A DNA stretch of 63,272 bases, filler included, from Lenisia limosa (GCA_001655205.1; 15 parts of 15 records of this genome joined end to end with filler, not necessarily neighbours in it); one strand, 5' to 3'. Numbered from the whole stretch's first letter, positions 59,836 to 63,272 are shown. Notes: generated by a model from the sequence alone, not told the origin. Numbers and translations: made by a program.

Positions 59836-59988
59836 NNNNNNNNNNNNNNNNNNNNNNNNNNNNNNNNNNNNNNNNNNNNTTAATTAATTAANNNNNNNNN
59901 NNNNNNNNNNNNNNNNNNNNNNNNNNNNNNNNNNNACCCCCCCCCCCCACACACACACATACAATATAACCCTAACAACACCTCATAC

Positions 59989-61096
59989 CACTGCTTGTTA
60001 ATCATTTTGAAGGTGACATGGTTGTGCTCCCCTCCAACTGAAGTTGTTGTACTAATCAGAAATCAGAAAAAGATAGAAAAAGAACAAGTACTCCTGGTTT
60101 CACTTCAATTACACTAAGAGACTGGAATAGTGACATGACTGAATGGTAGAGCATTTCTGGGACCCCTCAATTTCGGCACCCCCCTCCCCCACCCAGCGGC
60201 CGGATGCTCGTGGTCAACAACGTGCTGATGGGCGGGCCTATCCGTGACGTGGTTGTGTGTTTCGGCTCCGTTGGTGGCTCCGTGGTTATCGATGTGCAGA
60301 TCGGTACCCATGATAAAACGGCCGCGGAGGTCTGGAACCTGTGGGGTAAAATTGGAAAATTGGAACAAAAAAGCCCAAAATAAAGTCTGTTGGCTGACAC
60401 ACAAACACGAAAGGTTGGGAACAAAAATATCGATAGTTTTCGAAAATTTATCTTGAAATTCAGTCTTTTTTTGTAACCAACGTGAAGCTCTACATCAATN
60501 NNNNNNNNNNNNNNNNNNNNNNNNNNNNNNNNNNNNNNNNNNNNNNNNNNNNNNNNNNNNNNNNNNNNNNAATCCCCACGATGCTATTATTTACATGTAC
60601 AGAGACCGCGGAAAGTCCTGACACAATTGACTGTAAGGCAAGCTCAATTTACGTGGCATGACTTATCGGGTCAGTGTTATTACTTTCTCATTAGTTTTGC
60701 TGAAAACACAGAAATATTCCGGACCATCCCTCCCACCTTCTCTCATCCGTGACGGTTGAGCCGTCACAAATCATCCAGCCGTAGGGCAGTTCCATAGCTC
60801 CGGGACGGGGGACCCACTGTGTTATCGAGCCGAGGGGAGCCACTGGATTGTTATTTGGGGTTGAGAAGCAATTTAACTAGGTATTGACTATCTTTGCCAC
60901 AAGTAGGGCTTCCCTTCGCAGACCGTTTAAATATCGATATTTATTGAGGATTTATCTAGAAATTCAGTCTTTTAAGGGAGCGTAGGGAAGCCCTAGCCAC
61001 AAGCACCCACCCCCTTACATCCAACATCAAGCTTCTGGTCTTCACCAAAGTGGATTGCCGTTGAAACTGAAAGATCCTCCTCAATTATGGCCTTTT
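59989..61096 (-). CDS. Phage tail-collar domain (PF07484-like) protein, spliced, partial
   Basis: Exons 61096-61019, 60842-60737, 60338-60193 and 60051-59989 give LAPLGSITQWVPRPGAMELPYGWMICDGSTVTDER...VPDLRGRFIMG...GATNGAETHNH...AGTTTSVGGEHNH. One small exon may be hidden near the 60500-60570 gap. Confidence 0.8.
60339..60420 (-). repeat. Intron 3'-end module D2 (sense, abutting AG); copies at 24412(+), 25910(+), 27480(-), 29208(+), 30840(+), 52221(-), 53303(-), 58480(-) and 61097(-)
   Basis: Consensus ..GTGTTAGCCAACAGAGTTGATTTTGGGCTTTTT..TTTCATAAATTT(T)CCAATTTTAC(T)CCCC..AG. Confidence 0.8.
60904..60995. mobile_element. hAT-type MITE family A, full copy
   Basis: TAGGGCTTCCCT...AGGGAAGCCCTA termini; perfect 8-bp flanking duplication GCCACAAG. 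Confidence 0.9.
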
Positions 61097-62771
61097 CTGT
61101 GGGGAGGGGAGGTAAAACGAAGGAAATTTATGAAACAAAAAAAAGCCTAAAATCAATTCTGTTGGTTAGCAACACACGAGGGTTGATAACAACCAAGCAA
61201 ACAAAAATTTGCCCATTTATGACACAAAAAATGCCCCAAATGGGGGTGGGGGAGTAAAATGGGAACCTTGCGTATCAAATGTGTTTGCTCACACACAAGG
61301 ATTGAATAATAATGATACAAATATAAAAAAAAAAAACACGAATAAATGGAAAAACGAACAAATAAACCACAAAAGCAACCTTGCTAGTTCTATACATTTA
61401 AGAAAAAAACGTGGCTTATGCAGTTGGGTGGTCAAATGAAAAAGTCAAAACACACAACAAACAATAAAAAAAAAGGGGAGAGGAGCAAATAAATGTATTA
61501 TTAGTATCTNNNNNNNNNNNNNNNNNNNNNNNNNNNNNNNNNNNNNNNNNNNNNNNNNNNNNNNNNNNNNNNNNNNNNACATTGTAAGATTGAAGAAAAA
61601 GAGTGATAAGTATTCCGGTTTCAACATTTCCATCCCTTATGATGAGGGGGGTTGACAAAACTAGACACAGCATTACTGACATGACAAAGATCTCCATGAT
61701 TCAAAATAACTAATTGCCTGCGCCAAGTCGGCAGGACTCACCCATTGGCCCATCTGTCCTTATAAACAGCGATACAGCGGTCTATACTCCCGTCTTACGG
61801 ATATTTACGACGTTGTTCTGGGTCGTCTCATAAGCGAAACTGGGTGACCAGAGGAAAAGCAAGGCAAAAAGAGAGTAAAGAAGGCCTTGTGTCCTCATTG
61901 TCATTTCTTTCAACTAAGCCCAAACTGGGAGTAGAAGGGGCTGGAAGCAGGGTCTCCGACCAAATAAAGCCAAAAAAGAAGCTGTCCGATTTTCTACCCT
62001 TTATTCCTTATAAATTTGGATTAGTGGCCAAACAAAAGTATTTACCAATCAGTCCTAGCTCAAAAGCTCACAATACTGTCAATATATGACTATGTGACTA
62101 TTTAGCTTATAACACAATCCAGGGGGCATTTATATCATAGTTGATTGTCCCCATTTTTCTTTGATTTTTCGATTTTCCACCCGCAGAATCAATCTAAAGT
62201 TATTTGCTGAACATATTAGTACCGGAAAATAAAGGAGAACGGGGTTCAGTAACATGGGAGTGGAGTCTTCGGTCAAAGACGCGCTTCTTGAAGCCCAGGA
62301 AAGGTTTGAAGAGCTTATATTGGGTGTAGTGACGCATTCAGTGTTACACAGCGCAAAAGATCGGTGGAGGTGATCAAAAAGAATTTTGTGAAGGATGCGG
62401 AGCTCACAGCTAAGCTGCTTGTGGAGGCGCTGAAGAGATCTTTCTTGGTTTTGGGGGTGGATTTTGAAGTTGGACGACTCAGGCACCTTAACTGTCAACG
62501 TCTTTTCTGTGTCCTTTATGAAAAGACCCCTAACCATCAAACAAAGCTATGGTTCCATTGGAATTTGGCTTTTTAATTTTTTTATTTCACAGGCTGATAT
62601 TCACCGCTATCATGATGAATAAGTTGAATGGAGAGTTTGCGTAAATAAGTACTTGCTCTCTTAGCTTTGTGGAAAATTAAAATAACTGTTTTTACAGAAC
62701 CTCTAGAGAAGAATCACATGTTATATGATGATGTATGAATGATAGATTGTTTTGCAAAACAGTACTACATA

Positions 62772-62841
62772 CGAGCGGGATAAGTCTTGACCGATTTGCT
62801 TTCTGATTTCCCACAAATAGGGGAAGACTTATCCCAGTCTG
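62772..62841. mobile_element. MITE family B, degenerate; half copy at 34522-34545
   Basis: GGGATAAGTCTTGACCGATTTGC...AAGACTTATCCCAGTC. Confidence 0.7.
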
Positions 62842-63272
62842 TTTATTAAAGAATAGAAAAAAGTACATTTACTCTGAGACAATAGTTTTGGAATGCTCTT
62901 CAAATAGAGCATTCATATCATATATATTGCCATGAGAAATATAAAACAAGGTTGTATCTGTGAAGTAATAGTTTCGGGATGTTCCTCAAAGAGCAATCAT
63001 TCATAGTTGATCTCACCCCACATTCAGATCCCGAAAAAGGAGTCGGCTGTTGAGCATCTGTTTCACCTTGCTGCGACGGTTTTCAGTGATAGCAAGGAGG
63101 CTGAGGTTTGTGGGGTTTACACCGTGACAGACTTATACAGTGACCTTGGTAAGTTTTATTAACGACTTACTTTGTGATCTTGGGATATCTTGAAACAGTC
63201 GGTTCCTTCAGGCAGACGGCCATCCATGTGAAGCAAAAATACAAAACATGCCTTATAAAATAGATAGTATAA

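Follow-up and report, generated by a model that had tools for sequence, protein, structure and literature searches.

Phage fibres contact the lipopolysaccharide (LPS) or the outer-membrane proteins of bacteria through knobs, and in the T4 proteins gp12 and gp37 the His-x-His motifs of these knobs hold metal ions. Free-standing bacterial versions of the collar are secreted or surface proteins. One study reports that Bdellovibrio, a bacterial predator, recognizes its prey via phage-fibre-like mosaic adhesive trimers (MAT) (PMC10769870). Here we describe a gene of the tail-collar family in the protist Lenisia limosa (GCA_001655205.1), located in a stretch of 63,272 nucleotides (nt), filler included, which was analysed as a whole and is called the window below.

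The gene is real, expressed, nuclear and eukaryotic. Its introns are removed in polyadenylated (polyA) RNA, its composition is host-like, and its relatives among the matches listed are otherwise prokaryotic or viral. The encoded protein is a so far undescribed member of the tail-collar/fibre-tip family. What is new in kind is its host and not the system, and a literature search for tail-collar genes in breviates gave no paper. We consider it likely that the gene came in by horizontal transfer, with a bacterium as the most probable donor, and that it encodes a secreted fibre-tip knob. The first-pass annotation of the window had read four GT-AG exons, a tail-collar protein and a horizontal origin at this locus, and all three readings hold; its statements on reading phase and on intron repeats need the amendments given below.

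Gene structure, splicing and the assembly gaps

The piece of the window with the collar gene spans 59936-63272, and the gene lies on its minus strand. In a three-frame reading, four open blocks on that strand (61096-61019, 60842-60737, 60338-60193 and 60051-59989) carry the motifs that had been quoted, each with an AG upstream and a GT downstream. Their translation contains PLGSITQW, LPYGWMICDG, VPDLRGRFIMG, GAETHNH and GGEHNH.

Two sequencing runs from the same study were used, a DNA run holding 95% of the words of the stretch and a polyA RNA run. A single 1017-nt contig from the latter covers 62064-61799, 61096-61019, 60842-60737, 16 extra letters, 60341-60193 and 60051-59987, in this order, and extends a further 337 nt past the piece edge in sequence unlike that of the window. 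It cleanly omits 61097-61798, 60843-61018 and 60052-60192, each of which reads CT..AC on the plus strand, that is, GT..AG for the gene, and it joins the exons at exactly these borders. None of these exon-exon joints is present in the DNA run. The resulting structure, numbered against the public protein record P0001 that is described in the next section, is as follows.

61799-62064, minus strand: exon 1, an RNA contig block ending in phase 1 and corresponding to residues 1-35 of P0001; it comprises the 5′ untranslated region (UTR, 62064-61905), the ATG (61904-61902) and a signal-peptide-like N terminus of about 24 residues (61904-61833)
61097-61798, minus strand: intron 1, GTAAGA..CACAG, 702 places including a run of N at 61510-61578
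61019-61096, minus strand: exon 2, 78 nt, short helical stalk upstream of the collar, phase 1 in and phase 1 out
60843-61018, minus strand: intron 2, 176 nt, GTAAGG..TCCAG
60737-60842, minus strand: exon 3, 106 nt, an RNA contig block with the first half of the collar (PLGSITQW..PYGWMICDG), ending in phase 2
60339-60736, minus strand: intron 3, the 19-nt micro-exon 4 (placed within the unread gap 60500-60570 by inference) and intron 4, whose 3′ end is CCCCACAG, the same repeat as in intron 1
60193-60338, minus strand: exon 5, 146 nt, encoding VPDLRGRF, the collar end and three of the His-x-His motifs, ending in phase 2
60052-60192, minus strand: intron 5, 141 nt, GTGGGG..ATTAG
59989-60051, minus strand: exon 6, 63 nt, the fourth His-x-His motif (GGEHNH)
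59936-59988, minus strand: start of intron 6, with the donor GTATGA at 59988, truncated by the piece edge

The ATG at 61904 is the first one after an in-frame upstream stop. At the other end, the last 90 codons (residues 172-261 of P0001) and the 3′ UTR are outside the window and correspond to the 337 nt of the RNA contig that pass the piece edge.

Phases assigned by hand agree at two of the three junctions between the four blocks, as had been claimed: 61096-61019 leaves one base and 60842-60737 supplies two, while 60338-60193 leaves two bases and 60051-59989 supplies one. At the third, 60842-60737 ends after two bases and 60338-60193 begins on a whole codon, with the gap 60500-60570 in between. 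The RNA contig explains the mismatch. The 16 letters that it carries between exons 3 and 5 are absent from the entire window, also when two mismatches are tolerated, and together with three ambiguous letters (CAG, which fit either side of the junction) they make up a micro-exon of 19 nt. With this micro-exon, phase 2 becomes phase 0 and the translation is S-RYINT-Q, identical to P0001; the frame is restored, so that all five junctions seen are in phase.

The letters flanking the gap 60500-60570 are not continuous coding sequence, and we infer that the gap hides the micro-exon together with parts of two introns. An assembly gap thus very probably hides coding sequence here. In intron 1, one 2120-nt DNA contig carries 60 letters across the second gap (61510-61578), which is written as 69 N, an estimate about 9 too long. 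An additional exon following a TTACAG acceptor at about 60633 was considered and rejected, as the RNA contig does not use that acceptor. At the left edge of the piece, 59936-59969 consists of a run of C followed by (CA)n, where reads seem to be cut; loss of reads there probably accounts for the contig ending inside intron 6.

Family membership and predicted structure

Protein searches were conducted exon by exon, and the later full-length work used the public record. With exon 5 alone (48 residues), phmmer gave nine matches among 1.84 billion representatives, the top one being the 261-residue P0001, with 100% identity over the exon (residues 104-151). P0001 is a Trinity open reading frame (ORF) without annotation from EukProt EP01086, L. 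limosa. It agrees with every hand-derived junction codon, micro-exon included, and supplies the 90 C-terminal residues that the window lacks; as the same RNA data are its probable source, it is not independent proof of the gene. With the present analysis this unannotated ORF gains a family assignment.

P0001 consists of a signal-like N terminus, a short helical stalk, a shortened collar, a head rich in His-x-His motifs and a C-terminal strand of the P-x-Y..L..I type found in the family. The N terminus, a basic residue and a hydrophobic run followed by S-F-A, is a putative signal peptide, judged from its residues. The protein has neither a membrane anchor nor a long shaft, only about 35 residues preceding the collar. 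There are five His-x-His motifs (131/133, 140/142, 146/148, 161/163 and 216/218), and three of these pairs are invariant in the bacterial subfamily described below and sit in the predicted trimer interface.

Exon 3 alone matches the Pfam Collar family PF07484 with E 0.0027 (18.1 bits, profile positions 7-24 of 57). Exons 2, 5 and 6 searched singly against Pfam gave no match, and neither did the four exons searched singly against NCBIfam. Full-length P0001 aligns to PF07484 with 23.1 bits and E 7.2e-5, residues 78-112 falling on profile positions 10-57; the profile match that the first-pass annotation had looked to is thus found with its motif set complete, at a score short of the family cut-off, which the relatives P0002, P0007 and P0009 exceed. 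The collar motifs P.G(S/T)(I/V)..W, P.GW..CDG and (L/V)PDLRGR are all present in exons 3 and 5, in columns that vary little or not at all among 31 members of the family.

The collar assignment is in line with further comparisons. Against PHROG, P0001 matches "tail collar fiber protein" with 1.8e-10 and, over residues 60-260, "tail protein" with 6.9e-9. A seven-row profile (alignment A1) matches the solved structure 6ov6 (Bizionia argentinensis C24) with 3.5e-9 over profile positions 60-193, the phage tail fibres 9qgo and 9nxk with 6e-9 and 3.9e-8, respectively, and T4 gp12 with about 2e-3.

When three copies of residues 25-261 were modelled together, the trimer score was 0.78 vs 0.00 for the best of three controls, with contact agreement of at least 78% and a predicted local distance difference test (pLDDT) value of at least 66 in the runs. 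The mark used is reached by 21 of 30 proteins solved as one-chain pairs and by 0 of 23 single-chain proteins. The predicted interface involves the stalk (30-53), the collar, the His-x-His stretches and the C-terminal strand, and the contacts of lowest predicted error run between residues 105-114 and 251-255 of different chains. The model thus predicts a homotrimer in which the C-terminal strand packs on the collar of a neighbouring chain and the His-x-His motifs line the trimer axis. In gp12 the chain end likewise goes back to the collar. A Foldseek search with the monomer model returned only fibre tips as top matches, the best being 1ocy with E 4.4e-4; the template-modelling scores of these matches, about 0.2, are weak, and we take them as giving direction only.

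Relatives, probable donor and host-genome context

A word search with P0001 alone found only P0001 itself. The seven-row profile found 4653 relatives, prokaryotic and viral; the 120 of these that were listed come from metagenomes and bacterial genomes and include proteins named tail fiber protein and microcystin-dependent protein as well as prepilin-fused forms, with no eukaryotic source but the query itself among them. A two-row profile gave 23 relatives and no other eukaryote. A metagenome scan gave 251 relatives, none above 27% identity; the gut-metagenome loci among them were left aside.

The closest relative, P0006, matches end to end with 117 bits (E 2e-36, 36% identity over 216 residues) and shares with the protist protein the insertion G.EG.GIYPL and the C-terminal strand. 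It is encoded without introns on a 1151-nt metagenome contig, 30 nt from an upstream gene. P0008 follows with 79 bits and P0130 with 69 bits, the latter from a tight row of genes on one strand. Together with a protein from a metagenome-assembled genome (MAG) of a KSB1 bacterium (L040), these form a bacterial subfamily marked by the motifs DWWRP and LLKIMRIR. The KSB1 protein also matches end to end, insertion and C-terminal strand included, and its gene lies on a 174-kb contig between a sigma-54 activator and a CBM4_9/BACON surface protein sorted by the type IX secretion system, a non-phage context. In a 23-row tree with more columns, the protist protein is sister to this subfamily with support 90/90.

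In most members of the subfamily, about 125 additional N-terminal residues form a domain that the protist protein does not have. As a separate observation, this domain of the KSB1 relative (L040:3602-4741) weakly matches the NCBIfam family Bdello_MAT_N (E 1.6e-7, 31 bits against a cut-off of 60). ORFs picked at two further loci of the genome scan (L041 and L042, alignment A2) were dropped as wrong-frame artefacts of GC-rich DNA.

Several results weigh against reading the locus as a bacterial gene for a fibre-tip knob acquired by L. limosa. A 45-row tree leaves the protist branch unplaced, the branch is very long (1.7-2.5 changes per column), and the approximately unbiased test neither rejects nor supports grouping it with the subfamily (p 0.14) or P0006 (p 0.13). 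P0006 itself is known from a metagenome only; the lack of other eukaryotic relatives rests on the matches listed, 120 of 4653; and a language-model atlas ranks clusters from viruses of eukaryotes nearest. As regards the protein, P0001 scores 0.9 bits below the 24-bit gathering cut-off of PF07484, and the middle third of the canonical collar is absent, the spacing from CDG to PDLRGR being 14 residues vs about 27 in canonical forms such as P0003. Of these 14 residues, 7 come from the micro-exon. The AlphaFold monomer is poor (pLDDT 60.7), with confidence limited to the collar and the last strand, and the trimer test was calibrated on two copies, not three, and its pass may reflect memory of solved fibre tips. 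Finally, the species label comes from one EukProt record that probably derives from the same RNA data and is not independent.

The alternative that survives best keeps the same gene and the same protein and takes the donor to be a virus of eukaryotes, i.e., a giant virus, a virophage or a polinton-like element; we regard it as unlikely. In the atlas the nearest clusters are collar proteins of Nucleocytoviricota (0.92) and Preplasmiviricota (0.91), IMG/VR contributes relatives with 33-37% identity over residues 56-172, some of these relatives (L008 and L012) are AT-rich, membrane-anchored forms typical of such viruses, and the unplaced branch in the large tree would allow this origin. However, the relatives on viral contigs match only residues 56-172, in the N-terminal half, with less than 52 bits, compared with 117, 79 and 69 bits for the subfamily in prokaryotic contexts. 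The end-to-end matches to P0006 and the KSB1 protein and the 90/90 grouping in the focused tree also speak for that subfamily, and within the piece the gene has no viral genes on either side. A bacterium is thus the likelier donor, a question that we consider only moderately resolved.

A further atlas cluster, at rank 70 with a score of 0.85, groups 76 proteins of Parabasalia under the name "Tail fiber protein, putative"; it has Gp10_C and PTR domains. As a lead only, fibre-like genes may exist in this other lineage of anaerobic protists.

It is a good deal less probable still that the gene is a decaying relic of the transfer, transcribed and giving no working protein. The very long branch and the shortened, sub-cut-off collar could be seen in this way, and no paralogues or orthologues showing selection were found. 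The short collar is, however, common to the nearest bacterial relatives, and so is not decay. The frame of 261 codons is uninterrupted from the signal-like start to the conserved last strand of the family, all family-invariant residues are kept, including the three His-x-His pairs common to the subfamily, the 19-nt micro-exon is spliced correctly, and the trimer is predicted with confidence.

That the contig is not from the protist at all, being a culture contaminant or a bacterial-eukaryotic assembly chimera, as a mixed-community culture, libraries labelled metatranscriptomic and two assembly gaps in the piece might suggest, is hardly credible given five introns seen removed in polyA RNA, exons lying between the high-copy repeats of the genome itself, a neighbour spliced on the same DNA contig, and matching GC content at third codon positions (GC3). 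To our knowledge, bacterial DNA has no spliceosomal introns. A small chance remains that the source is another eukaryote of the culture. GC3 is 0.58 in the collar-gene exons vs 0.60 in the neighbouring gene, and the introns of both have a GC content of about 0.36-0.39. The exons are present at single-contig depth, and no paralogue was found at 90% identity or more in the DNA run.

The divergent neighbouring gene is described by the following entry.

62240-63105, plus strand: neighbouring gene with three exons in the piece, seen as the blocks 62240-62301, 62340-62446 and 63027-63105 of a second RNA contig

Its two introns measure 38 nt (GT..AG, 62304-62341) and 580 nt, about 175 nt separate the ends of the two RNA contigs, and its exons gave no Pfam match. 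The 2120-nt DNA contig that bridges the second gap spans 61164-63272, the spliced neighbour included; the eukaryotic character of the contig is thus not confined to the collar gene. The collar gene sits beside an unrelated spliced gene, with no virion, baseplate or sheath genes.

The first-pass annotation had also stated that at least two of the introns carry a module called D. Abundant repeats are indeed there: parts of introns 1, 2 and 4 have a summed DNA-run depth of 1e4 to 5e4 and are copies of short dispersed repeats, and the same depth is found at 61056-61279. The repeat of intron 2 is a later insertion and not the origin of the intron, as its features demonstrate.

60904-60995, no strand assigned: miniature inverted-repeat transposable element (MITE), 92 nt, inside intron 2, with 16-nt terminal inverted repeats TAGGGCTTCCCTACGC / GCGAAGGGAAGCCCTA

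The MITE is flanked by a perfect 8-bp target-site duplication, CTTGTGGC (61003-60996 and 60903-60896), a size typical of hAT-type elements. Its core is 87% alike to 60425-60469, and its family occurs in thousands of contigs of the DNA run. The target-site duplication implies that the MITE entered intron 2 after the intron existed, then with a length of 76 nt. An introner origin of intron 2 was rejected, because both the MITE and the duplication lie inside the intron; a literature search found no paper on introners in Lenisia. For at least one intron, the order is thus shown to be intron first and repeat second.

The situation is different at the 3′ ends of introns 4 and 1 (60339-60415 and 61097-61175, minus strand), which are homologous over about 75 nt, through the pyrimidine tract and the CACAG acceptor. 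The shared end belongs to a very abundant repeat, other copies of which diverge near 61124 in the DNA run. It is possible that this repeat supplies splice signals to introns 1 and 4, and as a side reading it may have given part of the intron gain in the transferred gene. With an intronless ancestor, the gene would be a clean case of intron gain after transfer, comprising at least six introns and a 19-nt micro-exon.

In the long intron of the neighbouring gene, a stretch of very high depth (62736-62959) includes an inverted repeat of 22 nt around a 15-nt loop (62777-62835). DNA contigs elsewhere fuse this inverted repeat directly to repeat modules of the collar-gene introns. The repeats appear to be modular.

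Possible role and comparison with known systems

Gene transfer from bacteria to anaerobic protists is well known and mostly concerns metabolic enzymes. A recognition module of the type with which phages find their hosts would belong to another class of acquisition. The breviate L. limosa is a free-living anaerobic amoeboflagellate that eats bacteria. It carries Arcobacter epibionts (PMC12453579).

In the scenario that we propose, the gene would have passed horizontally into the protist, most probably from a bacterium, and would then have gained at least six spliceosomal introns, five of them complete in the piece and the sixth cut by its edge, along with the codon composition of the host. Its product would be a secreted protein of 261 residues corresponding to the collar-plus-head knob of a phage short-tail-fibre tip, lacking the long shaft. 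Having neither a membrane anchor nor a long shaft, it would be a lectin-like trimer, soluble or bound to a matrix, and not a long surface fibre. The first-pass annotation had suggested a surface-fibre or extrusome system, and no observation at the locus favours an extrusome link. Such a trimer, released or displayed by the protist, could bind glycans or LPS on bacterial surfaces, and its role might be to capture prey or to hold the Arcobacter epibionts.

By analogy with phage knobs, binding of a released or displayed trimer to bacterial envelopes, for prey capture or for holding partners, is a tentative proposal that we rate somewhat below even chances. Doubtful to a further degree is the more specific idea that the protist uses the phage-type knob as its own secreted, metal-stabilized trimeric lectin for prey or Arcobacter, a eukaryotic counterpart of the Bdellovibrio trimers. 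Even so, the protein offers a testable candidate for how breviates recognize prey or partners.

Among the known systems, the Bdellovibrio MAT fibres are a functional analogue in a proposed role only (PMC10769870), and the protist protein itself has no MAT match. The collar fibre proteins of giant viruses and virophages resemble it in the collar and the His-x-His stretches and form the nearest atlas clusters, whereas the bacterial subfamily has higher sequence scores than they do and the protist gene lacks viral neighbours in the piece.

With the T4 tips, gp12 (1ocy, 1pdi, 5iv5) and the gp37 needle tip (2xgf), the protist protein shares the collar motif set, the His-x-His head, the last strand returning to the collar and, as a prediction on the protist side, the trimer; these tips are also the best Foldseek matches, with a profile value of about 2e-3. 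It differs from them in having no shaft, no baseplate-attachment part, no virion context and no middle segment of the collar, in being encoded by a spliced eukaryotic gene with a putative signal peptide, and in an identity of only about 20%.

The free-standing bacterial collar proteins, i.e., the "microcystin-dependent protein" type (6ov6) and the DWWRP..LLKIMRIR subfamily, differ in that their genes are intronless and most encode the additional N-terminal domain of about 125 residues. They share with the protist protein homology from end to end, with 36% identity in the case of P0006, as well as the short collar, the positions of the His-x-His motifs, the C-terminal strand, and a secreted, non-phage setting.

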